DNA from: Neoconidiobolus thromboides FSU 785
Taxonomy: Eukaryota; Fungi; Entomophthoromycota
Assembly (NCBI GenBank): GCA_025603075.1
Contig: MU626407.1
Location: forward strand, 1 to 48,026
Reading direction: 5' to 3'
Length of the DNA: 48,026 bases
Made by a program: the position numbers and the translations under genes. Positions 1-17,689 of this stretch are shown in pieces (within the stretch, counting starts at the first letter, position 1; each line of letters opens with the position of its first letter). The notes below the pieces were generated by a model. The model had not been told where the DNA came from. It ran no database searches and was given only the letters and a program-made list of their open reading frames with translations.

Positions 1-65
1 TATTTAAGTTATTTTAAAGTATCTATTTTATCATTTTCATTTATCTTATTTTAGTATTTGTATTC

Positions 66-165
66 TATGGGGATGTTTTTTTGATTTTGTTACTTTTACA
101 TTTTTTAAGCACTATTTTAAGTGAAAAGGTTGTTAGTAAAATTCTTAAAAAATACATTCCCATAT
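66..165 (-). mobile_element. MITE-like ~105-bp element, family 1, copy 1 (reverse orientation)
   Basis: Begins TATGGGGATGTTTTTTTGA and ends AAATACATTCCCATAT; the interior is the reverse complement of the copy at 471-576. Confidence 0.8.
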
Positions 166-470
166 AATATTTTATACCATTTCATTTTTCTCAAAATCTT
201 CTCAATTTTATGTACCGTTACTTGTTATTTATGTGCTTATATGCTCTTTGCTTATATATATAAACTTGTATCATATAGTAGATCTGAACTTTCTCTTTAT
301 TAATCTTTCTCTTTTTAAGCTTTTTAAGATTAAACTTATAGTTGACCCTTTGGGCTATTATTATATTTGAAAAAGAATATCAATTACTATAGAAAAGATG
401 AAAATTTCCATTTGAGTTGCTTTATTATAAATTGGTGATTTTTTTGAGAGAGATGATCCAAATTACAATA

Positions 471-576
471 AATGGGGATGTATTTTTGTGTTTAAGAATT
501 TTACTAGCAAATTTTCCACTTAAATAGTGCTTAAAAAATGGAAAAAGTAATGAAGTTAAAAAAAACACTCCCAAAT
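471..576 (+). mobile_element. MITE-like element, family 1, copy 2
   Basis: AATGGGGATGTATTTTTGTGTTTAAGAATTTTACTAGC...GAAGTTAAAAAAAACACTCCCAAAT; imperfect ~18-bp terminal inverted repeats. Confidence 0.85.
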
Positions 577-847
577 AGCTTTTTTTCCATTTAATGCTAG
601 TTTAATAATATGAACATCATATAAACTTTTAACCCATGTATATTTAATAAAGTGTGTAACTTATTCTACTTTATAGCAAATTAATTCATTCTTTTATGTT
701 ACAAAAAATGCTGATGGGAATGCTTTATTTTAAATACTAGATATGAAGTTATTAATATAACCCTATTTCATAGAAAACTAGTTAATAGCTTATCTTAACT
801 TATTGATCTTTTGGATCCAGGTATTTTTATGCTTTAACTTAATTCAA

Positions 848-1111
848 TTGAGTAGGAGGCAACGAATAGGCAGATACTTGGTTTTTCACTATAATAAATC
901 CGCTATCTCAGATAGCGTTTAACAATAAAAAAAGGACAAAGTAGATTAAAAAATCAATTATGGTAAACTGTTGATAAGGTTGGTTTAGGATAGCTTATAT
1001 TTGGTTTAAGGTTTGAATTCCTATTTTAAATTTTACTGTCAATTTATTCTATACGAATTAATGCTTCATAAAATAAAACGCTCACCTGTCTATTCGTTAC
1101 CCCCTACTTAA
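848..1111. mobile_element. Small element bounded by 26-bp inverted repeats (putative MITE, family 2)
   Basis: 848-873 TTGAGTAGGAGGCAACGAATAGGCAG versus the reverse complement of 1086-1111 TTAAGTAGGGGGTAACGAATAGACAG: 22/26 identical, all mismatches transitions. No ORF inside. Confidence 0.55.
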
Positions 1112-1416
1112 ATAATTTGTAAATAGTTGACAAGATCCAACTTTCTTTTTTAATACTTACAATTATTCTAATGAGTTGGCTTATTTGACATATATACTAG
1201 TTAAGAGCTTTAAGTTATTTGTAATAAACTACCAGATATTATATTAATGTTGTGTTTTCATAAATGTAATATTGATCTAATATATTGTACATAATCTATT
1301 GAAGTTTTATAATTTAGGCTACATGCATTTCCTAAATATAAAGCTACAGCCACTTCAAATCGTAAAATATCCTTCAAATTCAATGAAATTTGAGATTGAT
1401 CAAAAATGTAATTAGC

Positions 1417-1516
1417 ATTTGAGGCTGTATTTTTGTGTTTAAAATTTTACTAACAATTTTCCGCTTGAATAGTGCTTAAATGAAAAAAATAATGAAGTCA
1501 AAAAAACACTCCAATT
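1417..1516 (+). mobile_element. MITE-like element, family 1, copy 3 (degenerate)
   Basis: GAGGCTGTATTTTTGTGTTTAAAATTTTACTAACAATTTTTCCGCTTGAATAGTGCTTAAA...GAAGTCAAAAAAACACTCC matches the family consensus. Confidence 0.75.
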
Positions 1517-1845
1517 TATTAGCTAGAAAATAAGGAAAAATATTATTTGCTAATATACATCATATAAAATATAAATATGAGTATGACAATTTTATTGAAT
1601 TATACTAAATAGACTGCTCTACTGAATATAGAATATACCAATTTATATAAACTAACTATATATAATTAATTTATAATCACAAGGTAATGAAATGCAAAAT
1701 GTTAATATATGAAATTAAAATCAATAAACAACTGTGTTTTAAAAAGATGAAATTATAGTATAAATAGTCTAAACTAAACTACAACATTGATTAAAATCCA
1801 ACAAAACATTATTTTGATAATAATAACAATCATTACTCATTTGAA

Positions 1846-2358
1846 ATGAAGTACTCTAATATAATTGCCCTCCTTCTTTCTGCCTCCATTGTTTCTGCTC
1901 ATAATGATTATAACGGTGGTAGAGATCCATATGAAAAAGACAGCCCATCAAAATCATGTAAGGATAAAACAGTAACTAAAACTGTTTGTTTAACAAAAAC
2001 TGTATCCGCTTGTCCTAATCCAATTCCAAGTAATATCTATGAAAATCCAGAAAGCGCTATTTTTAGAAAACATAAAAATAACCCAGGTAAAAATGGGATT
2101 AGACGTAAGAATGGTGATTATAAAGATCCATATGTAGAAGAGAAAGAAACAGACCCATACCATAAAACAAAGAAAGAAAAAGAGAAAGAGAAAGAAACAG
2201 ACCCATACCATAAAACAAAGAAAGAAAAAGAGAAAGAAACAAATCCGTACAAAGAAGAAGAAGGATATCCAAATGATAACTATAATGGTAAAGATAACAG
2301 ACCCAAAAACAACCCAAAGAACAAATCAAAGGATGAAAAGGCAAAGAAACAACATTAA
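1846..2358 (+). CDS. Secreted Lys/Glu/Tyr-rich protein A (170 aa), paralog of 3942-4412
   Basis: Signal peptide MKYSNIIALLLSASIVSA; CKDKTVTKTVCLTKTVSACPNPIP module; repeated DPY motifs; intronless; TATAAA at 1759-1764. Confidence 0.88.
   Translation: MKYSNIIALLLSASIVSAHNDYNGGRDPYEKDSPSKSCKDKTVTKTVCLTKTVSACPNPIPSNIYENPESAIFRKHKNNPGKNGIRRKNGDYKDPYVEEKETDPYHKTKKEKEKEKETDPYHKTKKEKEKETNPYKEEEGYPNDNYNGKDNRPKNNPKNKSKDEKAKKQH
2140..2250 (+). repeat. Coding tandem repeat (EKETDPYHKTKKEK, about 2.5 copies)
   Basis: GAGAAAGAAACAGACCCATACCATAAAACAAAGAAAGAAAAA occurs twice exactly, followed by a third partial variant. Confidence 0.85.
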
Positions 2359-2665
2359 TATGAGTAATTGATAACATGAAGATTAAAGATTGAAAAGAAT
2401 TTGATATTTTTTTGTCTTTGGTTTAATAAATTTGTTGAATTTATAAAAAAAATTACTTTTATATTTCTACATTCTTATATTTTTAAAGATAAATTCATTA
2501 CAACTTGATTGTTAAAAAAATTAGTATATAACTTAAAAATAGTACAATATTAACATATGAATCATTCATAATAACTATATATCCTTTGGTTAAATTTTAT
2601 TTAATAGTATAATAGTTGATATTTAATTTTTTTATAATTTCATACAATCTTATATAAGTAATAAC

Positions 2666-2773
2666 ATACGGGGATATATTCTTATGTTTAAGAATTTTAC
2701 TAACAAGTTTTCCATTCAAATAGTGCTTAAAAGATACAAAAAGTAATGAAGCCAAAAAAAAACAGCCCCATAT
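2666..2773 (+). mobile_element. MITE-like element, family 1, copy 4, fused tail-to-tail to an inverted end fragment (2770-2800)
   Basis: ATACGGGGATATATTCTTATGTTTAAGAATTTTACTAAC...CAGCCCCATAT runs directly into GGTGGTGTTTTTTTTGGTTTCATCACT, a reversed right end sharing the ATAT. Confidence 0.8.
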
Positions 2774-3941
2774 GGTGGTGTTTTTTTTGGTTTCATCACT
2801 AGAATCAGTAAATTATGAAAACGGTGATATGTTATTTAATATCTTGAATTCATTTACTTATTAAAGTTTAAATTTGCTTTATTACTTGTAATTACTTTGT
2901 TTTCAGTATCACTATTGGAACGTTTTAAATTATCTGATTCACACTTCTTTTAACATTGACTATTAGACGCTTTTATACATTTATTACCTTTTCGCATACA
3001 CGTGAACTATCTACTCTTATCATACAAAACTATTACTAGAAAAAACTTTGTTCTTTCTTACTGCTTCCACTACTCTTTTTTCATGCAAACAAATTTGTAT
3101 GAAGTGGAGTTAGTCTATTTATTTCATTTTTATGCTTCAAACCCAATCAAGCGATTAGTATTTTTTCGAAATTTATATTAATTTCAATACCTTTAAAGAC
3201 ATTTAATAAACTAACCTTCAGCTTTTTTCCCTTAGAAATAATAGTTAGGAACTTTCACTTTTGAGATGTATTATAAAAACTTAATGTGTACAAAAGAAAA
3301 TAAATGGATTAGTAGTAAAACAAAAAGACAAAAATAATCTAATATTAACTAACTATACATGCCTTTGGCTTTTAATAACTGTCTATTTTAACAATTTTGT
3401 TCATTATATACATACATATATTATATGAACCAATTTTTTTATTAAATTTATAAATAGTAATTAATTTAAATAATGTTATATTTAAAGTAGTTTGTATTTT
3501 ACGAAAATCGTATATCTACTTTTAGAATGCATATGTCCAAGATACTATTTATTGAATTAGCAACAGAACCTTAGGAACTGATTAATAAGGTAGATGTACT
3601 TCCTTTAAGTATAAAACATAAAATGCACTTCAAATTAACAATCAACACCATATTACATTTATTGATTTTAAAATTAATAACATTACTAATATATCTTCAA
3701 CATTTTTGTTAATTTGTACTAAATAAATTACATTGTTAAATATGCAATATAAACACGTATTGAAATTAATTACATTAATTAATTTATAATTAATAAAATA
3801 GAAAAATACATTTTGATCTTTCAATATTATAATAAATGAAACTAATACTAATAGAAGTATAAAAACATTAAAACCAATCGTTAAACAATTTGTAAATCGA
3901 TAAGACATTATTTTGATAATAATAATAACTATTCATTTGAT

Positions 3942-4412
3942 ATGAAGTATTTTAATATAGTTGCTCTCCTTCTTTCTGTTTCCGTTGTTTCTGCTTACAA
4001 CGATTATAACGGTGGTAAAGAACCATATAAACAAGAAAAACCATGTGATGATAAAACAGTAACTAAAACTGTTTGCGTAACCAAAACTTTATCTGCTTGT
4101 CCCAATCCTATTCCAACTGATCCAACTAAGAACTTAAAGACTTTACCATACGAACGTCCAAAGGATATGATTTACAGAAAACATGGGAATAAGCCTAGTA
4201 AAAATGAAGTTAGGAAAGAAAGTGGTAAAAAACAACAAGCTCAAGAATTACATATGAAAAATCCAAAACATAAGTCAAAGTACCCACTAAAAGAAGATAG
4301 AATTATTGTTGATGAACATCAATATAATAACAGGAAAAATAAATCTAATAAGGGATTAAGATATAAACCTATTGATAGAAGACCAAGAAAGCAACACAAT
4401 GAAGAAGAATGA
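3942..4412 (+). CDS. Secreted Lys-rich protein B (156 aa), paralog of 1846-2358
   Basis: Signal peptide MKYFNIVALLLSVSVVSA; CDDKTVTKTVCVTKTLSACPNPIP; ~40 nt of 5' flank (ACATTATTTTGATAATAATAAC...CATTTGA) shared with gene A. Confidence 0.88.
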   Translation: MKYFNIVALLLSVSVVSAYNDYNGGKEPYKQEKPCDDKTVTKTVCVTKTLSACPNPIPTDPTKNLKTLPYERPKDMIYRKHGNKPSKNEVRKESGKKQQAQELHMKNPKHKSKYPLKEDRIIVDEHQYNNRKNKSNKGLRYKPIDRRPRKQHNEEE

Positions 4413-4774
4413 TTTTTATTAAATTAATCTGAGAAATTAAAAATAACTTGTTGTTTCTAACTTTCTTTTATAATAAAATTCATTGTACTCGTAAAATCTT
4501 AATATTTTAAACATGAAATTATTTTGAAATTTATTGAAGTATTTGATTATTTAATCTTATAAAAGCTCTAATAATTACTAAAAATTATTAGTGTAAAATA
4601 TAGTTCAAAAACCATTACAATTGGTAACTCATAAATACTAACATGTATACTTTATCGTAATAACATTTTATTTTTAATATGAAAAATTATCTTATATAAA
4701 AGAAGGTATCTTATCTAGAGAAAAATAGAAAAGTAATGAAACCATTTCCAGATATGTAGAATTACTTGAAAAAT

Positions 4775-4856
4775 CGACACCTGCAGGATTTGAACCTGCG
4801 CGGGGAAACCCCATGAGCTTTCTAGGCTCACGCCTTAACCGCTCGGCCAAAGTGTC
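4775..4856 (-). tRNA. tRNA-Ser(AGA), copy 1
   Basis: Minus strand folds as acceptor GACACTT/AGGTGTC, anticodon arm TGAGC-CTAGAAA-GCTCA, long variable arm GGGG-TTT-CCCC, T arm GCAGG-TTCAAAT-CCTGC; T-run terminator follows. Confidence 0.96.
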
Positions 4857-5401
4857 TTATTGCATATACTCAATATTAAGCAATTATATTTAATTGTATA
4901 ATATTAACACAATTATTGATGGAAGTTACTTTGACTTAGTAGCCTTTTGTTATTGTTTCTATAATCCAGATATATATTTCATTATAGATTATGTTGATGC
5001 TTTAAGTAATTCATACCAATATCTTTGAAATAATAATATATTACTAAGGACCTTATTAATTTCATTCAAAATTGTTGATGTTTTCTTATAAATGATGTGA
5101 AATATAGTTAAACTTTAAAAGTACTATAAATAGTTAACAAAGTCTAAATCTATCAAGTTTTAGCATTGAACTATATTAATAACAATTCTAATATCTTATT
5201 AAACAAACTATTGTTTATAGCAAAATATTTATTAAAATTTAGCATTTATACAATTCATCACAAAAAAATTTAAATTGTGTAACTTACAAAAAATAATAAA
5301 ATTAATGAATTATAAACTTAAAAATATAATTTCATTACTAACAATTAATAAATTTAATAACAGTAGAAAGTAAAATTCAAGAAGCAACTAACGGATTATA
5401 T

Positions 5402-5854
5402 CTAATAATCAAACTCATCTACATTATCGCTCAACTTTCTATATTGGTTATTACCTTGATTATAGTCTTCGTTGCCTTGGTTATAATCATTACCGTCTTG
5501 ACTATAATCCTCTTCATTTGAATTATAATCCCCATACTCCGGGTTAATTTCTGGAACAGTAACTTCACTTTCATAAGGTAAAATATGCATTGTTTCAGTA
5601 GGGCAAATAGAGATAGTAGAAGTTGAATAAGTTTCCACAACGGTAGTTTGAGTCACGGTAGTAGGTATATCTTGACTACAAGTTGGTGTATTTCCTGATG
5701 TTACAGTTACGGTTACAGTACTTGGCGAAGGTTTGTTTCCGCCAACTGTTTTGGTCACCCATTTAGTTTTTGTTTTACATTTATCTTTAGGTTTACCATG
5801 GCCCATGACGAGGCTTAGTCCTGCTATTGCTAATATCAATTGATTCAATTTCAT
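5402..5854 (-). CDS. Secreted Thr/Val-rich protein C with acidic DYNQGN repeats (150 aa)
   Basis: Signal peptide MKLNQLILAIAGLSLVMG; HGKPKDKCKTKTKWVTKTV; three Cys; C-terminal 7-aa repeats EDYSQDG/NDYNQGN/EDYNQGN. Confidence 0.85.
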   Translation of the reverse strand: MKLNQLILAIAGLSLVMGHGKPKDKCKTKTKWVTKTVGGNKPSPSTVTVTVTSGNTPTCSQDIPTTVTQTTVVETYSTSTISICPTETMHILPYESEVTVPEINPEYGDYNSNEEDYSQDGNDYNQGNEDYNQGNNQYRKLSDNVDEFDY

Positions 5855-6419
5855 CCCGGATGAGTTTTTATGTTAGTTTATTTAAAGTTAATGTTGAAAG
5901 GCTCATTAGCTGTCTTTTTATACTTAATTGAAGTGTTGGTTAATTTATGGATTTATTTAGTAATAGCACAGATAGCTTTAATTTATTAATCAATTAAAGA
6001 ATTTTTTCTTATAAATACAATTATTGAATGTTCTATAACCCTAATTGTGTTAAATTTATTTGAAATAAATCAATTTTACATAAATCGTAATTGTATTAAG
6101 TTGAAGTAATTATTAAATTATGTATATCAACTTTTTTTAATTTGCTTTATTGAATTTTTTAATAAATTATTTATACATAAAGAAGTTTATTAATTATCAA
6201 TTTATCTATAAATTACAAATATTAAATTTATCAATACTAATCAATTTACATATTTAAAAATAGTAATCATATATTCAACTACAATAAGTTTAAGGCAATG
6301 GAAATATTAAATATAAAGAATTAAAGTGAATGAATAAATTAAATGTTAGATAAAGTAGTGTTTTTATTAAGACTTAAATTATGGTTTCATTAAAAAATCT
6401 GGTAGAAAATAATAATTGA

Positions 6420-6501
6420 CGACACCTGCAGGATTTGAACCTGCGCGGGGAAACCCCATGAGCTTTCTAGGCTCACGCCTTAACCGCTCGGCCAAAGTGT
6501 C
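6420..6501 (-). tRNA. tRNA-Ser(AGA), copy 2
   Basis: Sequence identical to 4775-4856; flanks are unrelated. Confidence 0.96.
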
Positions 6502-7227
6502 CCTTATATTGGGGGTGATAGTTAATCTTATTTAAACTCTTTATTGCAAGTGACGAATGGTAGGTTAACATCCTTATATCTGTTTTGAAGCTTAATAATT
6601 CTCTCAGTTTATATTATAGTTTATATTATAGTTTATATAAACGATATTTTAGTACCGTTATTCTTTAGAATCAGTATGTATATAAAAATGTCACTTTTGA
6701 AGCATTTGTCCAGACTGTACTTCGTTGAAAATTTATCTTAGAGTAAACTCAAACTTTATAAAATCAATACTTGTTTAATAGATCATACTAAACTATTTTA
6801 AAATACAAAAACTTCCCAAGAAAATAAACTCTACTATTTATATTAGAGTTTTGTTTTACAATACATTAGTGTAATAATAACCTTGTTAATTAAATTATTA
6901 AGCTTTAATCATAAATACATTTGTAAAAATACTAGGAACATTTGAAATTAAAAATTATTAGGTTATTATTTCTTTTTCCCATTAACAATTTTATAAATAC
7001 AGTGCAATGAAATTATGCGATCTATTTTATAAATAATAACTCAATATTGTTCAATTAATTAAAATTTTATACATTACTAAAATATACAAAAATGACTGTA
7101 TTTACCATATAAATCCGTAGAAATTCTTTAAAACATTAGTTTGAAAAATATATAAATAGAACACATCAATAATATTTTGAAAATTAATTTTAATATCTAA
7201 ATACATCAAAAAGTATATTCATTTGAC

Positions 7228-8538
7228 ATGAAATACCAAAATCTAATTCCTTTATTACTCGCTTTGACTAGTGTAAGTGCCCATAATAAACCAAAAGAGT
7301 GCAAAAAAACGGTTACAAAAACTAAGACCGTTACTTCAGATGACTATGGATATGGTGACGATTATGGATATGGTGACGATTACGGGTATGGAGAACCGGT
7401 AACTGTAACTATAACTGAAACTCCAGCTCAAGACGCTATTTGTACAGGGAGCTATGGAAGTGAAGGAAACGGGAACTATGGAGATAATGGAAACGTTATC
7501 ACTGTTACGCAAACCAGTATAAAGCAAGTAGTTCGTACTGAAACGGCTTCTTATTGTACTGGAACTGAAAGTAAGTCAAGTGTTACTACATCAAGTACTC
7601 CATACACTGAGCCACAAACTCCATCTGGTGAAACAACCCCTGTTCAAACCGACATTACCACTAAGCCTAAGCCAACGGTTGTAACTGAAAGCCAACCATC
7701 AGTATCAAAAATCACAACTACAAGTAACGATTCAAAGCATTCCACAAATCCTTCACCAGAATATACTGATGGATATGATACTAATACACCTGCTGAGTCA
7801 AGTACTCCAGCTGATGAATATTATATTCCACCTGAGGAGTCTTATAATCCACCTGAAGAATCTAATACTACACCTACTAAGCCCAATACCCCATCTACAG
7901 AACCCAGTACTCCACCTGTGAAAAGCTCCACCCTACCATCAGGATCTACTGAGGTATACGATTCAAAGGTTCCAAACACCCAAACAACTGTTAGCGAAAA
8001 TTTACCAACTAGTTCCACCACCTCATCATGCTCAACTTCTACTAGCAGTAATTCTCCAAATAACTCTAGCACTTCATGTTCAACAACCTCCAGCGGAAAT
8101 GTACCAACTAGCTCCAGTACTTCTTGCACAACTACCCCTAGTGGAAATGTACCAACTAGCTCCAGTACTTCTTGCACAACTACCCCTAGTGGAAATGTAC
8201 CAACTAGCTCCAGTACTTCTTGCACAACTACTCCTAGTGGAAATGTACCAACTAATTCTAGTACCTCTTGTACAACCACCCCTAGTGGGAACTTATCAAT
8301 TAGTTCTAGCACCACTCCGTGCTCAACTTCAACCGCTACTGTTATCACTGGTGTGCCATCTTCCAACTTACCTATTAGCTCCTCTTCATGTACTACAAAA
8401 ACTACTGGTATTAACACTATTCCAAGTTCATCACCTTCTGAAAGCACTCAGCCTGAATATCGTAAAAACAACCAAGGTGGTAAACCGTATGACCCAGCTT
8501 GGATTAAAAATTATCTTAAAGCTGCCTTCCTCAATTGA
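7228..8538 (+). CDS. Secreted Ser/Thr/Pro-rich mucin-like protein D (436 aa), related to protein C
   Basis: Signal peptide MKYQNLIPLLLALTSVSA; HNKPKECKKTVTKTKTVT; (DDYGYG)x3; 15-aa Cys-containing repeats; no hydrophobic GPI-type tail. Confidence 0.9.
   Translation: MKYQNLIPLLLALTSVSAHNKPKECKKTVTKTKTVTSDDYGYGDDYGYGDDYGYGEPVTVTITETPAQDAICTGSYGSEGNGNYGDNGNVITVTQTSIKQVVRTETASYCTGTESKSSVTTSSTPYTEPQTPSGETTPVQTDITTKPKPTVVTESQPSVSKITTTSNDSKHSTNPSPEYTDGYDTNTPAESSTPADEYYIPPEESYNPPEESNTTPTKPNTPSTEPSTPPVKSSTLPSGSTEVYDSKVPNTQTTVSENLPTSSTTSSCSTSTSSNSPNNSSTSCSTTSSGNVPTSSSTSCTTTPSGNVPTSSSTSCTTTPSGNVPTSSSTSCTTTPSGNVPTNSSTSCTTTPSGNLSISSSTTPCSTSTATVITGVPSSNLPISSSSCTTKTTGINTIPSSSPSESTQPEYRKNNQGGKPYDPAWIKNYLKAAFLN
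7339..7392 (+). repeat. 18-bp coding tandem repeat x3 (DDYGYG)
   Basis: GATGACTATGGATATGGT GACGATTATGGATATGGT GACGATTACGGGTATGGA. Confidence 0.85.
8083..8310 (+). repeat. 45-bp coding tandem repeat, about 5 copies (TTPSGNVPTSSSTSC)
   Basis: Near-identical units of CCTAGTGGAAATGTACCAACTAGCTCCAGTACTTCTTGCACAACTAC. Confidence 0.9.
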
Positions 8539-9554
8539 TGATTTAGTTATTTAATATATAAAAATAAAGCATTGGTCTTTATATTGTTTTTATTTTTTTT
8601 AAATTTACTGTACTAATCTAGTAGTTTATAACTTGACATATGGCTGGATAATGATAAAAAATACTAAATGCTTTAAAATAAGATGATACCTGGTTTGATA
8701 ATACAAAACAAAGCTTTAATTACTTGCTTATAGTAACTTTAGTACATTTGTATTCATTAATACTATTTATTATTTAAAAAAACATTGAGATATTACACGT
8801 TTAAATGGTTTGCTATTAATGAGGTTAATCTAAGAAAGGAAAACTTAATCTAAAGTATTTAATTTGAAACTATATTATCTTTAGCTCTAATTAATGTTTT
8901 TAGGGCATATACAGCTTATTAGACACGGTTAATCATTGTAATTGAAGTACATCATATCTTTTAGATAACACTTCTAAAGTATAATTTAACCTAAGTAAAA
9001 ACAAAGCTATATCGAGTAAAGCTAAAACCCCAATTGGTAATAAACAAAATTTAACACTAACAATTTCTAAATACATAAAACCAAGGTCTCTATTGTAATA
9101 CCTGAAACAACCCCTATACCTTTTAATTTATTCATGCCTCTAAGTAAATTATTAATAAGGGAGACTTAGATGTAAAGAGGTTAAATATGTTCTTTCCTTT
9201 GAAAATATTTCTAACAAAATACTTATGTTTATAGTTCTAATAAATTCTCATTATTCCATAAACAATAATTTTTGGATAAAAATCATTAAGTTTGAATAAT
9301 ACTCATCAACTGTAGACATTAAACATTATATTTACAAAAATAGTCGTTTTAATTTTAAAAGCCCAATATAAACCTTAATATTGAAAGTTTAATTGCTTGT
9401 CTTAGAGACATGGTTATATTGCATAGGATAAGAATTTAAAAATAAACTTAATCATCAGATATAACCAGGGTATAAAGAACACTTGTTTTAAATGGCAAAG
9501 AAACACTAAAGGTATATCAGAATTACCTTGAATTTAAAAAGTACTAAAAACGAT

Positions 9555-9626
9555 CTTCCTCACGGGGAATCGAACCCCGGCCGTTCCGGTGAAAGCGGAA
9601 AATCCTAACCACTGGACCATGAAGAA
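9555..9626 (-). tRNA. tRNA-Glu(TTC), copy 1
   Basis: Acceptor TTCTTCA/TGAGGAA, anticodon arm TTCCG-CTTTCAC-CGGAA, T arm CGGGG-TTCGATT-CCCCG; 72 nt; identical to 24428-24499. Confidence 0.96.
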
Positions 9627-10270
9627 TTCATTATGTTTAAATTGTAATTAATATTATTTATTGTACTTTTATTACTAACTTTTAGTTTAAGTCTAATTAG
9701 CCTCTTGATTGGCAGACCAGTTTGTTTGGTGCTTTTTGACCTTTGCTTTTTATTTAAAATATCAATTGTTTTTCATCAATAAACATTTAGGAAAGATATT
9801 GCTTAATTAAGTGTAATGTAGTCAGATAAATAATCGACATAAAATCTATACTCATTTACTCTTTAATTTGAGTTTATTTTACCAATGATACTGATTTTTA
9901 GGATATTTTACAGCAGCAGTCCTGTTTTGCGACCTTTGCTATATTTAAGAAATGAGTTATGGTGAAATTCAGCTAAAATATAAGGACTGGCTATTAAAGA
10001 ATATCATGAGAATAATTTAACTATGAAAATCACTACTAAAAGAGCTACAAAAAAGTTGCAAAGTTATAAAACTCAAGTTTTTCATTTTATGTTTTAAACA
10101 AATTAAATAATGAATTAATCTTAAATTACAGTTGTTATTTATTCTAAACCATTAGAAAGAATTTGTAAATGTTTAATTTTTAGAACTTATAACTGGTCAT
10201 GATCTCAACTATTATTATAAACCGAGATAATTCCAAATATCTTTAGCTTTAAATTGATTTAGAAGCTATA

Positions 10271-10479
10271 TAGCATTTTCGAAATAATTGAGTCAAAAAC
10301 CAAGCACGTTTTAAGTTCAAATTCGCACTTCTTAAATGGCTACTTGAAAATAAACCTTTGGATTTTAAGCCAAAATAATAGAGCAGAAAAAACTATTATT
10401 TTTAAATAAGCGTTTAAGAAATGTAAATTTGGGCTTAAAGCGCGCTTAGTTTTTGACTCAATTATTTCGAAAAATACTG
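10271..10479. mobile_element. Fold-back/MITE element with ~80-bp terminal inverted repeats, Tc1/mariner-like ends (family 3)
   Basis: Left arm TTTCGAAATAATTGAGTCAAAAACCAAGCACG... matches the reverse complement of the right arm ...CGCGCTTAGTTTTTGACTCAATTATTTCGAAA. The right end reads TA|CAGTA on the minus strand, and TA flanks both sides. Confidence 0.7.
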
Positions 10480-11085
10480 TAGTTAAGAATTATTTTGATG
10501 AGTCAATATTAAATAATAAAAATCGCTACTTAAGACTAGAATTAATGAATATACTTTTTCACTAGATCGCTACTATAATATAAAAGGATCTGTATGCTTG
10601 AAGAACACTTGATTAAAGATATGTTTTAGAAAAATAACTACATTTGAACAAATAAAATTATTAAAATGACTACAATAAGAATAAAAAGGGGCAGTTAAAA
10701 GTCAAAGAAATTAATCGGTATCACTCTATGCTTTTTCATTTAAATATTCATTTTAAAATAGTCTCATTTAATATTTTTAGCCGCTTATTAAAAAACAATT
10801 GATTGTTGCTTTTTAAAAAGCTTTACACTACTCCTAGCAGTTTTACTATAAATAACAAAAAACATATTTGCCTTTCAAGCCAAAAAGTAATTAAACAAAG
10901 ATGAAGGCTTGCTTTTCAAAGATCATGTAAGCCTTTTGGTAAAAGAAGATCTTTGAACAAGCTAAAAATAACTTTGATGCATCTAAGGTTGCATTTTAAA
11001 AATAGCAAAGGTAGGAAAATATCGATAAAAGAAGGTATAAAAAAGCAAGATCGGAATTAAAAGCTAATACGTAAAAAATCGAACT

Positions 11086-11709
11086 ATGAAATTCACATCT
11101 GTTTTTCTTTTAACTTTAGTCGCCTTGGGTTATGCCGGTGCTGACACCCAAGCTACCAGTAGCATTCCCCCTGCTGGCGAAGAAGTAACTCCAACTTTGG
11201 ATACTAGTGCAAAAAATGGTGTTCAAGGAAGAACATTGGGTTTAGTTGTTCCTATCTTAAGTTCAGTATTTGGAGCTTTATTCGGTGGAGGCAGTGGAGG
11301 AAGTTATGGTGGAGGTAGTGGAGGAAGTTATGGTGGAGGTAGTGGAGGTTATTATGGTGGCTATCCCTATTATAGCGGAGGCTACTATGGTGGTAATGGA
11401 GGTTATTATGGTGGCAGTGGTGGCTATTATGGTGGCTATCCTTATTATAGTGGCATTATCGGATGGAATGGTCCTAATCAATATTACGGAACTGTCAATA
11501 ACTATTATACTATTTATTCTCCAAATATTAAATACATCAATAATGGAGATGGTACCTATACTCTTTACATTTTCAATATTAGCGGAGTTCAAGGCTCATC
11601 TACCATTCAGCTTACTTGTCCATCTAATACATTCAAAATTAGTAAATCTAATAGCGGTTATCTCTGCCAAGTTTCTCAAGGTGCCTCCTGCTATGTTAAA
11701 TACTCATAA
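11086..11709 (+). CDS. Secreted Gly/Tyr-rich protein E with a Cys-containing C-terminal region (207 aa)
   Basis: Signal peptide; spacer ending VQGR; TLGLVVPILSSVFGALFGG; GGSGGSYG and GGYYGGYPYY repeats; C-terminal segment with three Cys. Confidence 0.88.
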   Translation: MKFTSVFLLTLVALGYAGADTQATSSIPPAGEEVTPTLDTSAKNGVQGRTLGLVVPILSSVFGALFGGGSGGSYGGGSGGSYGGGSGGYYGGYPYYSGGYYGGNGGYYGGSGGYYGGYPYYSGIIGWNGPNQYYGTVNNYYTIYSPNIKYINNGDGTYTLYIFNISGVQGSSTIQLTCPSNTFKISKSNSGYLCQVSQGASCYVKYS

Positions 11710-12018
11710 AAATAAATTATTGTTATATATCAATTTTATTTTAACTATAAGGCTAGGCTCGCTTTTTTTCGATTTAAGCTATTTAGTATAAATAGTATAA
11801 ATATTTCATTAACACATTAAGTCACTTAAGCATAATATAGAATACAATAAAAATAAGTAGTTATTTAATTTCTAACCTTCAAATTTAAATCAAATTTAAA
11901 TCAAATTAACTATAATAAAACACTTGGATGTTTATATTTCTTAAGGTTTTAAAATAAATAGAAAAAAGACATTATATATCTTCGTAGTTTTAGTACTTAA
12001 GATGTCTATAAATTTTCA

Positions 12019-12123
12019 ATATAGGGATGTATTTTTTTGTTTAAGAACTTTACTACTAATCTTTCCGCTCGAATAGTACTTAAAAAATGGAAAAAGTGAT
12101 GAAACCAAAAAAACACCTTATAT
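12019..12123 (+). mobile_element. MITE-like element, family 1, copy 5
   Basis: ATATAGGGATGTATTTTTTTGTTTAAGAACTTTACTAC...GAAACCAAAAAAACACCTTATAT. Confidence 0.82.
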
Positions 12124-12772
12124 GTTGCAATGCTGTAAATACTTGTTATATAAAGATAATAGTTTATTTGTTTTGAGGCAGTTTTATATTATGAAGATAT
12201 TACCCAAAAATTCAAATGAAATAAAGGGCTGTTCTATGAAATGGGTACTATATTTAAAAACTATGAATTAATAATAGTATTAGCTACTATTATATCGGAC
12301 AAAACATAGTGAGGATTGTTATTAATATCTCTAATTCACTTCATTTAAATCACACTACTTTAGTGATATTACTTAAAACAGTTGGCCATAAGCCAAAAAA
12401 AGGAATATCAAATTCAAACTTGAAATTCGAACTTTATTTTTTAACTACAACTTACTACTAATGATACAAACTATTATGTAAGCTTAAAGGGATAAAGAAA
12501 TGTTTATTTTTGTAGCTTCAAATACTATGCCATTACACAACCTAAATTAAAAAACTAATACATCATTAATGATTAGCACATAGCATACCAAACCCGATCA
12601 TCAAAAGAGCCTTTTATTTTTGAAATTAAGAATCCTGAATAACCCGGCTGAAACTACAAAAAAGCATAGCAAGCCTAACTTTAAAGAAAAGGCTTTACTT
12701 TAATAAAAAAGAGATAGCTATATAAACCACTCAAGTTAATGGGATTTTCATATTATTTAAAATACACTAACA

Positions 12773-13285
12773 ATGAAATTTACGCCAATTTTTTTACTTT
12801 TAACTGCTTTGGTTTACTGTGAAGACCAACAAGCACCTAGCTTATCTTCAGAAAATCAAGCTTCTAATTTATCTTCTGAGAATCAAGTTCCTAGTTCTGA
12901 AGCTACTCCAATAGCAGAGCCTGTACAGGGTAAGACTTTAGGTTTGATTTACCCACTTTTACATGGTATACTTGGTGGTGGTTTTGGTGGCAGCGATGGA
13001 GGCAGTAGCAGCAGTAGCTCTGGCTCATCAGCTAGTTCCACAGTAAACAATTATATCAGTTATGGTGGAGCAAATGGAGGTAGCGGCGGTTATCCTTACT
13101 ATGGTGGAGGATATTACGGAAATGGTGGAAGCTATTATGGAAGCGGGTATGGAGGTAGTGGTTATTATGGTGGAGGTTACTATGGCGGCAGTGGTGGTTA
13201 TTATGGAAGCGGTGGTAGCGGCTATTATGGATCTGGCAGTGGATATACTGGAATTGGAAGTGGTAGTGGTGGATATTACCTTTAA
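12773..13285 (+). CDS. Secreted Gly/Tyr/Ser-rich protein F (170 aa), paralog of protein E
   Basis: MKFTPIFLLLTALVYC signal peptide; acidic spacer ending VQGK; TLGLIYPLLHGILGG; GGYPYYGGGYYG shared with E. Confidence 0.88.
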   Translation: MKFTPIFLLLTALVYCEDQQAPSLSSENQASNLSSENQVPSSEATPIAEPVQGKTLGLIYPLLHGILGGGFGGSDGGSSSSSSGSSASSTVNNYISYGGANGGSGGYPYYGGGYYGNGGSYYGSGYGGSGYYGGGYYGGSGGYYGSGGSGYYGSGSGYTGIGSGSGGYYL

Positions 13286-13487
13286 ACTAGATATCTCATA
13301 ATCTAGCCTGTGATTGCCAAATAAACTATTTATGTAAATGCTATTATGAGTTTAAAATTTTGGATCACCAAGTTGTTTTTAATTGACTTTGAAGTTTGTT
13401 GTAAAAAAAGTATCTTAGAAATCAACCAACTTCATTTTATATATTATCGTTTAAAAGTTTTGTGAATAAAGTAGATCAAAAAATAAA

Positions 13488-13569
13488 CGACACCTGCAGG
13501 ATTTGAACCTGCGCGGGGAAACCCCATGAGCTTTCTAGGCTCACGCCTTAACCGCTCGGCCAAAGTGTC
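13488..13569 (-). tRNA. tRNA-Ser(AGA), copy 3
   Basis: Identical to the copies at 4775 and 6420; T-run terminator immediately 3' on the minus strand. Confidence 0.96.
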
Positions 13570-13598
13570 TTCTTATAATCAAGTTTTATAAATAATTT

Positions 13599-13700
13599 AT
13601 ATTTGACTATTTTTTCGACTTTATTACTTTTTTATCTCAAAGACTATTTAACCAGGAAATTGCTATTAAAATTCTTAAACGCAAAAATGCATCCCTATAT
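13599..13700 (-). mobile_element. MITE-like element, family 1, copy 6 (degenerate, 30 bp upstream of tRNA-Ser)
   Basis: ...GACTTTATTACTTTTTT...GGAAATTGCTATTAAAATTCTTAAACGCAAAAATGCATCCCTATAT aligns to the reversed consensus. Confidence 0.68.
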
Positions 13701-14402
13701 ACTGCTATAAACCAGACTAAATTGATTATTTTTTTATTTTTTCTTTATTTTTTCTTTCCCGCTTTACAGCCTAAACTCATCTTTATTTTAATATCAAGAT
13801 AAAGCCAATATATGATTAATTGTATATATTGCTATTGAAATATGCATGAGCTACTTTAATTATAAATATTAGTATTCAAACTAATTATCATAATAAAAAT
13901 ATAAGTTGTTTTAAATGTAAATTAGTTTGAAATTTATTTAAAATTTCTACTCATCATCATTTTAATGTTGTCTCAAATAGTTGAACTAAACTTATAGGAT
14001 GGTTATAAATTGCTTCAGTCTATTGAGAAATGTTTTCGCACCTTGTAGCCTAGCTTTTCATGCTTCAACAACACCTTATAGAGGTGGGGCACTTTTTATA
14101 AAAATCTGTTCAATAACTAAATATAGCGAAAACAAATAGCAAAGTATGAAAACCTATATGCAAACTCCAACTTATCTGAATAATATTTTACATTTTATTT
14201 TTGTTTAAAATACCATACTAATATTTAAGATATTAAATATGATATGATCAATAATACAACTAAAATCATTCTTTATATGGTGATAATTTTTAATTTATAG
14301 TCACCAAACATTTTATATCAAATTGATCTTAGTTATAGAAACTACTTTTATAAATAAATTGTTGTTCAACAAAATTTTTACAAATTCAAAGTTAAATTTT
14401 GA

Positions 14403-14517
14403 ATATGGGAGTGTTTTTTTTGGCTTCATCACTTTTTCCATCTTTTAAGCGCTATTTGAGTGGAAAAATTATTAGTAAAATTCTTAAATACAAAAATACA
14501 TCCATACATCCCCATAT
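14403..14517 (-). mobile_element. MITE-like element, family 1, copy 7
   Basis: ATATGGGAGTGTTTTTTTTGGCTTCATCAC...AAAATACATCCATACATCCCCATAT, with an internal ATACATCC duplication. Confidence 0.85.
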
Positions 14518-14550
14518 AAATTAATCAAATCTTAAAATATAGTTTGAGTA

Positions 14551-14653
14551 TATAAGAATGTATTTATGTTTAAGAATTTTACTAACAATTTTTCCACTCA
14601 AATAGCGCTTAAAAGATAGAAAAAGTGATGAAGCCAAAAAAAATACCCCATAT
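14551..14653 (+). mobile_element. MITE-like element, family 1, copy 8 (inverted partner of copy 7)
   Basis: GAATGTATTTATGTTTAAGAATTTTACTAACAATTTTTCCACTCAAATAGCGCTTAAAAGAT...GAAGCCAAAAAAAATACCCCATAT. Confidence 0.85.
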
Positions 14654-16873
14654 GTTTTAGTATAAATGCCAATTATTTTTAATTAATAAATACATAGGAA
14701 AGTAATATAGCCTGGATTAAAACTTTTAATTTATTTTTACATTTATTATATTTATAGTATTTAGAAAGTTATCGAAAAGAGCACTTGTTTTATAATTATT
14801 ATTACCTTTGATAGTTAATTTTAGTCATTGAATATATAATTACACAGTGATTAGATCAAGCGCTATATACATCAAATACCTATAGTTAGATAATAAGCTT
14901 CATGACTCTATTAAGATTTGAAAATAATGTAGATATAAGATTTGACAGTTTCTTATAATAAATATTAAAATATGCCTTGAGAACGCTTTATCATAGGTGG
15001 CCAAAATAATTGGTATAATAAATAACAATCAATTATCTATAAATGAAATTTGTTGAAATATAATTTAATAATATTTTTATTTAAAAAATAAGTTTTAATA
15101 CAAAAATGGATATTTAAAGTCGTTACCAAGGTAAGATAATAAGAGTATAAAATGCATGATGCGAATAAAGATTATTTTTAGTTTAAACTTTTTTATATAA
15201 ATGTAATGATTTTAGTTATTACATGCCTCAGTCAACTCTTTAATTTGACATTCATTTAGCTGAATTTAAAAAACATCCACTTATTAAATTGGAACAATCT
15301 GTTATACTTACTCATGTAAAAAGAGCTGAATATCTAAAAATAAATTTATTATTAATAATATACAGGGCATTCTTATTCTTTCCATACATCCTAATAGCTT
15401 ATAGTTGTACCCAGTCTATTATTGATTGTTAAGGTAATTGTTTTATTATGTATAATAAAAATAACCGCAATATGTAATCCTGATAATATCTTATGGAAAA
15501 CTACTGGGTCTTTTATTAATATCATTCTTGCTTATATTATTAGAGTAGTTTAAAAGCTTATGTGTAGCTTAATAATATGTAGGATCCAGTACTTTATTAC
15601 AAAGATAGAGCTGCCCATAGTACTCAATCCAGGTATTATATCATCATACTGATAAAATAAGACCAATTCTTAATTTAAGCAATAAAGCAATCATCCTAAA
15701 ATTTATTAAAGTAATAAAAATTTGGAATCTACACTAAGCACTGAGTGATTTTATAGTTCTCTTATAGTTTAAGAACGCTAAAACTCAAATAAATTAATAT
15801 TATTTGTATAATGTCTATTTAGGCATAAAAATTCAAGTAAAAATTATAAACGTATAGGTAAAAACTCAAAAAGTAAACAAGGTTGTTAAATTGTATAGTG
15901 TTAAATATTTTTTATAAGTAGCTTTAAACTTTTATACAAAAAATAAACTGGATTTAACTTTTTAAAAACAAAATAACCCAATGATTTGATTTAACTTATT
16001 ACTTTATTACACTTATTAAACCTGTATTTACGTAAAAGTTTAATATTAAAATACATCGTGAAAACGAACATAAATATGATATATTAAAAGCTTAATTAGC
16101 AAAGACAGTTCACTGTACAGGTAGCAACTTGATGCCTAGAATGAACTGCAGTTAAAGCTATAAATAACCAAAAGTTATAGAATAAATAAAAAGTCCGTCA
16201 TGAAATCAGAATGACTTCAATTAATAAAACTGGGCTTAAAAAATCACTAGCTAAAGCCAAAGCTCCGATTCAAAATAACCTTTTGAAAAAAATTTCGGTT
16301 TTATTTTAGCCAATTACAGGAGAGAAAATTGGGATTAATTTTTCAAAAGTTGATGAGGTGGATCATGATGAGATTATGGCACTTAAGCTATTGCTGTGCG
16401 GACTTGAAAATTAGATTCCGAGAGGAACTTATCCTCATTGAAATCTACTGAAGATTACTAGTTCATTATGAGCTTACAGTTTGTTTACAAAATACGCTTT
16501 CATTTTGATATTAAAATTGGTAAGGTTACACATGTGAGACTAGATGACATTAAGTTACCTTTACACTACATATAAATTAAAAAACATTAAAAAAGGTGTA
16601 TTATTTTATTTTAAAAATAGTAGGGTTATAAAGTGAAAAAATAGTCTAAGAAAATTTAAAATCTTAAGTTTTGAAGGGAGAATAATAAAGAGTAGAGTGA
16701 AAATATCAACAAGAAAAAATAAGCTACCATTACCAGTAATGTGAACATGGACTTAGTGATCGTATATATATAAAGGTCAGATATAGGATAGAGAACGTTT
16801 TTACAACCCACCGTTTGTCATTTTTAAAATTTGATTTACACATATTCCATTTTTAGCTTAATACATACATAAC

Positions 16874-17689
16874 TTAAAGCGGACTGCAAAATCTACGTTT
16901 TAATTTGCCTAGGGGGTTCTGTATAATTGCTCTACAAGCCGATTGGAACACTTGGTCTACCCCCTCGCGTGTGCGTGCAGAACATTCTAAATATTTTACT
17001 GCTCCTATTTGTCTAGCTGTGGATATACCCTAATCAATAAGTTAATAACTGATTATTACGTTATCTTAATCTATTACCTGTTGCTCAGATACTGGTGCCT
17101 GTCCTAAGCGATCTAACTCGGTTAAAGTAGGAAGATCTTTACGTAGATCCGATTTTAGACCAACTAATAAAAAGGGCACTCCTAAAGCAAAGTGAGATAT
17201 CTCTGGATGCCACTAAGAAAAAGTTAATAAAGTTAAAGACAAACTAAAAATATAAGGCTTACTCTTTCTATTACATTTTTAAGTGAAAGTTGAGAAGCAA
17301 TTGAGAAGGCAATGATCAGTACATTTGTATCTGGATAAGATAATGGCCTTAGCCTATCATAATCTTCTTGGCCAGCGGTATCCCATAAGGCTAACTCAAT
17401 CTTTTTACCATCTACTTTGACTTGAGCCATATAATTTTCAAATACTGTAGGTACGTAGGTCTAGGTTAAGTTGTAAGTAAATGATATATAGATAAACTTG
17501 ATGAAAAGTTACTTTTGGGAACTCATTGGTTGCGAACACAACCAATAAACATGTCTTTCCACAACCTCCATCGCCAACAATAACAAGTTTTTTACGTAAG
17601 TCTGGCATGGGGGCACGTCTTATCTTTGTTTAAAATATTAAATAATGAAATGAAAAAAGAAGAGAAAGAGTTACCTTTCTAGTACTCAT
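16874..17689 (-). CDS. Rho-family small GTPase (Rho1/Rho4-like), 5 exons
   Basis: Spliced product MSTRK|[27 protein letters not shown]...|[10 protein letters not shown]...[17 protein letters not shown]...|...LKSDLR...|...YLECSA...[11 protein letters not shown] boxes, polybasic tail and CAAX present; all introns GT-AG. Confidence 0.93.

Follow-up and report, generated by a model that had tools for sequence, protein, structure and literature searches.

As judged by sequence similarity, the six-gene cluster (genes A to F) at the beginning of a contig from the entomophthoralean genome of Neoconidiobolus thromboides FSU 785 is composed of two adjacent tandem families, A to D and E/F, not of three independent pairs. 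We favor, with about an even chance of being right, the explanation that these families encode small, secreted and largely disordered proteins that are restricted to this species and have a role in the wall or matrix. Each protein would serve in a growth stage or under a condition of its own, not as a subunit of one co-expressed material.

Gene content of the locus

The window analyzed was the whole contig (MU626407.1; 48,026 nt). In its public annotation, positions 1-16538 contained six single-exon genes and nothing else, which agreed with the preliminary description, where six intronless ORFs with signal peptides were taken as the only credible protein genes in the first ~16 kb. All six ORFs were confirmed at the coordinates first proposed (Table 1), and the GC-rich islands in the ~24% GC background corresponded to these ORFs and the tRNA genes. 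The tRNA-Ser(AGA) and tRNA-Glu(TTC) genes are taken as neighbors of the cluster. Because ~8.8% of random codons would be stops at the local base composition, a 150-codon open frame was calculated to arise by chance at ~1e-6. The intactness of six such improbable frames argues against the explanation that some members, above all B, are evolutionary debris, young duplicates or de novo-like ORFs with little or no function that chance has kept open for a short time; we regard this explanation as decidedly unlikely.

The N-termini of all six proteins were signal-peptide-like, with Lys at position 2, a hydrophobic core of 12-15 residues and a small residue at -1/-3; the signal-peptide call was a heuristic based on these features, and the proteins are probably extracellular. 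In a Pfam scan, no family was matched at threshold by any of the six, consistent with the earlier statement that no catalytic domain and no named family were recognized in them. The compositions were also as described earlier: A/B were Lys-rich, C/D were Thr/Ser-rich and acidic, and E/F were Gly/Tyr-rich.

Against shuffled sequences, similarity was found between A and D (z 9.0), B and D (7.5), C and D (7.5), and A and C (3.7), as well as between E and F (11.6), whereas E/F did not reach z 1.5 with the members A to D. Thus, among the three paralog pairs proposed earlier, A/B and E/F were solid and C/D weak but real, whereas the independence of the three did not hold, since they form two families. 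Most of the statistical surprise of finding six secreted genes in a row therefore disappears.

Table 1. Features of the gene cluster and its surroundings, with positions in the window
Feature	Position	Strand	Evidence or remark
Gene A, 170 aa	1846..2358	+	ORF and annotated gene, composition
Perfect 48-nt x2 tandem duplication within A	2138..2233	+	Copies 100% identical
Gene B, 156 aa, paralog of A	3942..4412	+	blastp, flank DNA homology
tRNA-Ser(AGA)	4775..4856	-	One of 3 near-identical copies
Gene C, 150 aa	5402..5854	-	ORF, annotation, composition
tRNA-Ser(AGA)	6420-6501		Further near-identical copy, interspersed in cluster
Gene D, 436 aa	7228..8538	+	ORF, composition, RNA contigs
48-nt x4.9 tandem array within D, encoding 16-aa Ser/Thr/Cys repeat	8056..8288	+	89% matches
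tRNA-Glu(TTC)	9555-9626
Gene E, 207 aa	11086..11709	+	ORF, predicted structure, paralog alignment
Gene F, 170 aa, paralog of E	12773..13285	+	Similarity of E and F to each other, composition
tRNA-Ser(AGA)	13488-13569		Further near-identical copy, interspersed in cluster

The first family: A, B, C, and D

The proteins A to D shared a signal peptide and a Cys/KTVTKTV module with three cysteines, and their relatedness was detected via the first ~70 residues. In A, this module was followed by a Lys/Glu-rich tail with D/N-P-Y motifs. A and B contained 17-19% Lys, with net charges of +10 and +16, respectively. The two were matched by blastp at 1e-24 with composition correction, and their DNA homology extended ~35-50 nt upstream of the ATG. 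The dN/dS ratio over the N-terminal 87 codons was 0.41. The C-terminal halves showed only 30% identity with saturated synonymous sites, as might be expected if B were debris, whereas the ratio at the N-terminus and the conservation of the 5' flank of B with A count against that explanation. By its sequence, the 48-nt duplication in A is a recent repeat expansion.

In C (8% Ser, 14% Thr; net charge -9), the module preceded a Thr-rich middle part, and [EDN]-D-Y-[NS]-Q repeats formed the acidic tail. In D (19% Ser, 20% Thr; net charge -13), it preceded three DDYGYG repeats and a long, mucin-like Thr/Ser/Pro stretch whose 16-aa repeats contain Cys. The negative charge of both was due to Asp/Glu. 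In the favored explanation, this family would have retained the signal peptide and the short Cys/Thr-Val module with its three cysteines, while the tails would have diverged fast by repeat expansion: those of A/B are rich in Lys/Glu and carry PY motifs, that of C consists of acidic DY repeats, and that of D is the mucin-like Thr/Ser/Pro region.

The second family: E, F, and an unlinked paralog

In both E and F (22-28% Gly, 14% Tyr; net charges +2 and -5, respectively), a signal peptide and spacer preceded a VQG[RK]-TLGL helix, which was followed by a Gly/Tyr run. In E, the hydrophobic or amphipathic helix (VQGR-TLGL) spanned residues 47-66 and the run residues ~67-135, followed by a conserved, predicted all-beta domain of ~70 residues (~138-207) with three cysteines. 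F had the same N-terminal layout with a longer Gly/Ser/Tyr run and lacked the C-terminal beta domain. Structure models of the proteins were disordered except for this domain of E.

A third member of the family, P0002, was identified in the same genome as an unlinked paralog of E, with 71% identity to E over the aligned C-terminal 90 residues. P0002 kept the beta domain, and its Gly/Tyr run was nearly gone. By alignment, the conserved parts of the E family are the N-terminal helix and the C-terminal beta domain, not the Gly/Tyr run. The members of this family would have retained the signal peptide, the spacer and the hydrophobic helix; the Gly/Tyr run that comes next differs greatly in length, and E and P0002 have the small three-cysteine beta domain after it. 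The position of P0002 also goes, as a coarse outcome, against the earlier expectation that homologs would be linked. The dN/dS ratio was ~0.3 for E/F and 0.16 for E versus P0002 over E residues 124-207; together with the ratio at the A/B N-terminus, these estimates demonstrate purifying selection, that is, constraint at the protein level.

Homology and fold searches

A search for homologs of A among 5.8 billion proteins retrieved only B, and sequence searches with A, C, E, and the beta domain of E found no homolog outside this genome, an absence that may partly reflect the small number of annotated Conidiobolus-group genomes in the databases. It would also fit the debris explanation. The weak power of searches with low-complexity queries may contribute to the absence as well: one homology search did not recover even F, although it is a true paralog. 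For E, neither a fold nor a sequence relative was found in structure and sequence searches, and its beta domain matched no known fold. The sole Pfam match was to the collagen-flanked surface repeat (CFSR, PF19079; a 49-position repeat) in E residues 145-173, at 15.4 bits, below the cut-off of 27, and assignment of E to this repeat was rejected because the score was under the gathering threshold. In an exhaustive profile search, CFSR, PKD, and Ig-like repeat proteins were matched by E only via an NGDGTYT-type hairpin (profile positions ~28-58).

Among language-model feature neighbors, fungal Ser/Thr-rich wall proteins were found for D, with scores of 0.7-0.88, and likewise for A; this resemblance does not reach the level at which chance can be dismissed and serves as a lead only. 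Chorion and cuticle clusters were weak feature neighbors.

Presence of transcripts in RNA assemblies

Transcripts were searched for in assembled contigs of RNA runs with coded conditions (X1, X2, X4, X7, and X8), which are a poor measure of expression. They were restricted to the ORFs, and intergenic bins were zero. RNA contigs of D were present in four of four runs, and in five runs 0.54-0.79 of the words of D were found. A was represented by faint contigs in X1, X2, and X4. Contigs of C reached a depth of ~30 in X1 and ~2.5 in X2 and were not found in the X4 and X7 assemblies. For the E-F stretch, the fraction of words present was 0.41-0.48 in X2, X4, X7, and X8, which fits transcription of both genes in these runs, and 0.12 in X1. 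B was nearly silent in four runs, with one 158-nt contig (depth 2.7) in X2. This near-absence could be read as a sign of debris, but B may be expressed in another, unsampled stage.

At this coarse, contig-level resolution, the RNA presence argues against tight co-expression of the six genes, which the preliminary description had suggested: C was abundant where E/F were low and absent from X4 and X7, where E/F were present. The abundance of C was limited to one run group, that with much larger assemblies; as a guess, these could be mixed fungus-host samples.

Possible functions of the encoded proteins

A wall or matrix role is the most plausible generic reading of the cluster; we infer the localization, glycosylation, cross-linking, and role of A to F as follows. 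The six would be extracellular matrix or cell-surface (wall-associated) proteins. D would be a broadly expressed, heavily O-glycosylated surface glycoprotein, and odd cysteine counts (3, 3, 3, 11, and 3) together with the many tyrosines may permit the proteins to be cross-linked into the wall through disulfides or oxidation. The combination of a signal peptide and a Ser/Thr-rich repeat region, as in GPI- or PIR-anchored wall mannoproteins, was found in D only. With its long Thr/Ser/Pro tandem repeats after the signal peptide, D resembles Ser/Thr-rich fungal wall glycoproteins and adhesins (TIR/DAN, FIT, flocculin/Als stalks), but there is no sequence homology, no GPI-like end, PIR repeat, or Pfam match was found, and A to C lack the long stalk. 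No GPI-like C-terminus was recognized in any of the six by a heuristic (mean hydropathy of the last 15 residues, -3.0 to +0.2), and Pfam gave no match to PIR or any other wall-anchoring family at E up to 1. Gly/Tyr-rich structural proteins include plant cell-wall glycine-rich proteins, insect chorion proteins, and high-Gly/Tyr keratin-associated proteins. E/F resemble these in having a signal peptide and GGY/GYYGG runs that could be cross-linked or stacked extracellularly, but there is no homology, and in the E/F family the run is variable and nearly absent in P0002, whereas the helix and the beta domain are conserved.

The preliminary description had proposed that the six proteins might be co-secreted parts of one conidial adhesive or coat, in which cationic A/B and anionic C/D would coacervate and Gly/Tyr-rich E/F, with the many tyrosines, would cure the material oxidatively. 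In entomophthoralean fungi, conidia reportedly carry a covering of mucinous, adhesive fluid (PMC9026835), and, in the literature searched, no description of the molecular composition of this adhesive in Entomophthorales was found. The opposite net charges of A/B and C/D, the tyrosines occurring frequently in regular motifs in all six proteins, the heuristic secretion signals in all six, and the odd cysteine number in five would suit such a material. As in sandcastle-worm (Pc) and mussel foot cements, oppositely charged secreted proteins occur alongside Gly/Tyr-rich ones. Unlike in those cements, there is no polyserine component, C/D being Thr-rich and mucin-like with Asp/Glu acidity and not resembling polyphosphoserine cement proteins, and there is no homology to them; joint presence in RNA runs was not observed at the contig level, with C and E/F not together in the same runs and B almost silent. 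Moreover, the Gly/Tyr run is not the conserved part of the E family, one paralog of which is unlinked, no tyrosinase, laccase, or peroxidase gene that could serve DOPA formation or oxidative curing was found within the 48-kb window, and tandem duplication of two families accounts for the adjacency. We therefore consider a joint adhesive highly improbable: probable extracellularity and the opposite charges of A/B and C/D stand, whereas the co-expressed three-component adhesive does not, and the charge-complementary glue idea is weakened.

By analogy, the six together might form the sticky or protective layer of forcibly discharged conidia, a fungal counterpart of polyelectrolyte cements with members differing by spore type, to which we give only a slim chance. 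A/B and C/D would then condense and E/F cross-link, in a lineage without hydrophobins, which are not known outside Dikarya.

The proteins might instead be directed at the host or competitors, as effector-like small secreted proteins of an insect pathogen or as antimicrobial peptides with E/F as Gly/Tyr-rich precursors, in a fast-evolving cluster; we regard this as unlikely. Clusters of secreted effector genes are present in Ustilago maydis. The arrangement of such clusters, at least three adjacent domain-free secreted genes that are partly tandem paralogs, is present here as six genes in two families. Secreted proteins make up ~5.7% of all proteins in zygomycete fungi, and ~46% of the secreted ones are small; two-thirds of the orthogroups of these small proteins lack a Pfam match, and few of the proteins are common to related species (PMC9391592), a background that also fits the favored explanation. 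The cluster shares with such genes (PMC9391592) and with those of U. maydis the adjacency of domain-free secreted genes, tandem paralogs, fast divergence of the tails, and a narrow taxonomic range, and the abundance of C in the run group guessed to be mixed fungus-host samples would also fit. It differs in its unusually low-complexity, tyrosine-rich proteins and in mixing two unrelated families.

In Caenorhabditis elegans, a 12-kb cluster of six genes encodes secreted glycine-/tyrosine-rich antimicrobial peptides, whose members are individually regulated (PMC2453101). The present cluster is similar to these nlp-29/cnc clusters in its ~12-kb extent, its six genes for small secreted proteins, some Gly/Tyr-rich, and its local duplication, as well as in its probable individual regulation. 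E/F have a signal and GGY/YGG repeats, as small precursors of the nlp/cnc type would; they are larger (170-207 aa), and E ends in a predicted folded beta domain. In addition, the nematode genes belong to another kingdom without homology, and Gly/Tyr richness is confined here to two of the six genes. In E/F, the spacer is followed by a basic residue ahead of the conserved segment, as a processed precursor might be, but no dibasic processing site was found at this proposed junction. Further, neither the beta domain of E nor the 436-residue mucin-like D is peptide-like.

Biological significance

In the best reading, these are ordinary small proteins of the secretome or wall matrix, specific to the lineage, that evolve through repeat expansion and are individually regulated. 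The importance would be much greater if they were conidial adhesive material, but the present evidence does not lead in that direction. The two protein families, both unnamed, and the small beta domain, for which no fold is known, are candidate surface markers. If the ordinary reading is true, the locus would show cleanly how species-specific secreted proteins arise in early-diverging fungi that are insect pathogens: genes are duplicated in tandem, the N-terminal module is conserved, and the tail grows by repeat expansion.

Genomic features of the secreted-protein gene cluster

The window of 48,026 nt represented the entire contig MU626407.1 (assembly GCA_025603075.1) of Neoconidiobolus thromboides FSU 785, an entomophthoralean fungus; N. 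thromboides has been described as a pathogen of many different hosts (PMC9409958). All six ORFs for secreted proteins (A to F) were found where the preliminary description had placed them, in agreement with the public annotation, which contained no other gene in the first 16.5 kb. Genes A to F and the tRNA genes coincided with GC-rich islands in an AT-rich background. The cluster started 1.8 kb from the contig end and may therefore extend past the assembly. The first gene beyond the cluster was an intron-containing gene for a Rho-family GTPase, whose exon fragments carried the motif GDGGCGKT and a second motif of 14 residues.

The genes for tRNA-Ser(AGA) (three near-identical copies) and tRNA-Glu(TTC) (two copies) were scattered among the secreted-protein genes. 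The tRNA-Ser copies had little flanking sequence in common, indicating that they were not part of the gene duplications. In addition, a dispersed MITE-like repeat of ~100 nt flanked genes of the cluster and was also present on contig MU626374.1 of this genome.

Features of the secreted-protein locus, with copies of the dispersed repeat on a second contig
Feature	Contig	Position (nt)	Strand	Remarks
Gene A	MU626407.1	1846-2358	+	ORF and public annotation, single exon
Gene B	MU626407.1	3942-4412	+	ORF and public annotation, single exon
Gene C	MU626407.1	5402-5854	-	ORF and public annotation, single exon
Gene D	MU626407.1	7228-8538	+	ORF and public annotation, single exon
Gene E	MU626407.1	11086-11709	+	ORF and public annotation, single exon
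Gene F	MU626407.1	12773-13285	+	ORF and public annotation, single exon
Rho-family GTPase	MU626407.1	about 16900-17610	-	intron-containing
tRNA-Ser(AGA)	MU626407.1	4775-4856	-	
tRNA-Ser(AGA)	MU626407.1	6420-6501	-	
tRNA-Ser(AGA)	MU626407.1	13488-13569	-	
tRNA-Glu(TTC)	MU626407.1	9555-9626	-	
tRNA-Glu(TTC)	MU626407.1	24427-24500	+	
Dispersed repeat	MU626407.1	460-565		MITE-like
Dispersed repeat	MU626407.1	2656-2761		MITE-like
Dispersed repeat	MU626407.1	12009-12114		MITE-like
Dispersed repeat	MU626407.1	14538-14643		MITE-like
Dispersed repeat	MU626374.1	about 2512-2646		MITE-like
Dispersed repeat	MU626374.1	9956-10185		MITE-like

Family structure and protein features

The six genes had been described as three paralog pairs. 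A/B and E/F were clear paralogs, and the homology of A and B continued for about 35-50 nt ahead of the start codon. In a shuffle test of the first 70 residues, in which the signal peptide and the remainder were shuffled separately, z values of 9.0 (A-D), 7.5 (B-D), 7.5 (C-D), and 3.7 (A-C) were obtained, whereas none of A, B, C, and D gave a value above 1.5 against E or F. Further, a KTVTKTV-type module and three cysteines were common to A, B, C, and D. On these grounds, A to D constitute one family and E/F a second, which corrects the proposed pairing to two families. The secreted share of the proteins of these fungi is about 5.7% (PMC9391592), so a run of six independent genes for secreted proteins would be highly improbable, which does not hold for two tandem families side by side.

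A signal-peptide-like N-terminus was present in all six proteins, while neither a GPI-type hydrophobic C-terminus nor a suggestively placed dibasic site was identified in any of the six, and a Pfam scan of all six yielded no match at threshold. The computed compositions and net charges agreed with those previously described. The low-complexity tails of A, D, E, and F were made of DNA tandem repeats, namely a perfect 48-nt duplication in A, a 48-nt array of 4.9 copies in D, and units of 21-24 nt in E and F. Cysteine counts were odd in five of the six proteins (A, B, C, and E, three each; D, 11), and the sole cysteine of F was located in the signal peptide.

The E family and its unlinked paralog

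A relative of E, P0002, was located on two further contigs of the assembly (MU626322.1 and MU626374.1), in each case 486 nt from the contig end. Positions 1-1053 of these contigs were 99.8% identical and were the only sequence in common; beyond them the contigs diverged, with p450/Arf on one and TAF6/TFIIE-beta on the other. This common end is an assembly fork, and the P0002 gene thus probably has two or more copies or haplotypes. Since the window and P0002 belong to the same assembly (GCA_025603075.1), an ortholog from another species was ruled out, and P0002 is an unlinked paralog of E. No overlap was found between the ends of the window and the contig ends carrying P0002.

P0002 retained the signal peptide and spacer of E as well as the VQGR-T[LF]GL segment, and its C-terminal 85 residues were 71% identical to those of E, with the Gly/Tyr run shrunk to a few residues. 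F was entirely devoid of the C-terminal domain of E. What is conserved in this family is thus the beta domain together with the N-terminal helix, whereas the Gly/Tyr run behaves as a variable linker. Purifying selection is evident from dN/dS ratios of 0.16 in the beta domain, 0.40 in the N-terminal part, and about 0.3 between E and F. Segment 51-69 of E was considered as a possible transmembrane segment (Kyte-Doolittle 1.82) and rejected, as its equivalents in F (1.12) and P0002 (containing His and Lys) were not membrane-like.

AlphaFold models of E showed a helix (47-66) and an all-beta domain of seven to eight strands, which gave a pLDDT of 66 and a pTM of 0.61 when modelled alone. Foldseek searches of E and its domain against AFDB clusters and PDB, together with a PDB sequence profile search, revealed no credible relative (no match with an E-value below 0.02 and no TM-score reaching 0.5 on both query and hit). 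When 1.84 billion representatives were searched exhaustively by profile, the full E domain was found only in its own cluster. The 33 non-self matches (bacterial, giant repeat proteins, one WD40) were rejected as homologs, because the alignments were limited to a short NGDGTYT-like hairpin that also occurs in CFSR, PKD, and Ig-like repeats.

Taxonomic range

Word-indexed searches of 5.8 billion proteins with A, C, and E returned matches from the N. thromboides genome only. The search with E missed F, and that with C did not recover C itself, though it is annotated on the record, indicating poor sensitivity for these low-complexity queries; the power of homolog searches is further limited by the few annotated relatives of N. 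thromboides. "Orphan" here means that no homolog is detectable in the reachable databases, which is the usual state of small secreted proteins in zygomycetes (PMC9391592). In the ESM Atlas, the E domain, D, and A had compositional neighbours only, all of them sub-threshold.

Transcript evidence

RNA runs were available as assembled contigs with coded metadata, and gene-by-gene depth was obtained for a 6-kb stretch (1800-7799) in runs X1, X2, X4, and X7. Intergenic depth in this stretch was zero apart from one tRNA and short repeat-related patches, of which the dispersed-repeat copy at about 2,600-2,800 was the largest; the RNA signal is therefore not DNA contamination. The repeat copy itself had a depth of 84-1017, by far the highest of the stretch, which implies abundant transcription of the repeat family at some site in the genome.

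Transcripts of A were faint in X1, X2, and X4 and absent from X7, its coverage being under-counted since assemblers split the gene at its internal repeat. B was represented by one 158-nt contig in X2 (depth 2.7) and was absent from X1, X4, and X7. C reached a depth of about 30 in X1 and about 2.5 in X2, with none in X4 and X7. D was present in all four runs, and by word share (the fraction of the words of a stretch found in a run) it was best represented in X1, X2, X3, X4, and X5. For the E-F stretch, the word share was 0.41-0.48 in X4, X2, X7, and X8 but only 0.12 in X1; as about half of this stretch is coding, values of 0.41-0.48 fit transcription of both E and F.

The preliminary description proposed that A to F may form a co-expressed, charge-complementary spore glue or coat. 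In the large-assembly runs of one study (X1, X3, and X5), D was present with little E/F, and C was strong in X1, the only one of the three with depth data. In the small-assembly runs of the same study (X4, X7, and X8), E/F were present, with some D and no C in X4 and X7. These contig-level data are coarse, but they show the reverse of what a co-expressed material would give, and the glue model has lost its main prop. No expression or proteome data on A to F or on N. thromboides were found in the literature.

Two further observations concerned the RNA contigs. X1 contained two contig variants of C, differing at 5726, 5736, and 5750, at near-equal depth (26.7 of 55.5), and thus reflecting two alleles or strains, or else another near-identical C copy off this contig. 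A contig in X2 with a depth of 798 joined position 1826, just upstream of A, to 7053, about 175 nt upstream of D, with 21 letters on the shorter side, and is most likely a repeat-induced assembler chimera.

Possible roles of the two families

The best-supported reading is that of two adjacent families of lineage-specific secreted proteins, each arisen by local duplication and with individually regulated members. A role at the surface, in the wall, or in the matrix seems most plausible: D is mucin-like, with Thr/Ser/Pro repeats, and fungal wall glycoproteins lie closest to it by language-model features (a lead only), odd cysteine counts invite intermolecular disulfides, and structural proteins outside the cell typically contain Gly/Tyr runs. 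The polyelectrolyte glue proposed for these proteins is only partly supported, although the observation that led to it was sound. The charges are genuinely complementary among A to F, and a mucinous adhesive coat is said to cover entomophthoralean conidia (PMC9026835), but the model has lost the support of co-expression and, in addition, wrongly takes the Gly/Tyr run for the functional core of E/F.

As a serious alternative to a surface or wall role, the proteins may act as effectors or antimicrobials. The nlp-29 cluster of C. elegans is strikingly parallel in layout, comprising six genes in 12 kb that encode Gly/Tyr-rich peptides, arose by local duplication, and are individually regulated (PMC2453101). 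The locus of N. thromboides belongs to a known kind, clusters of orphan small secreted proteins.
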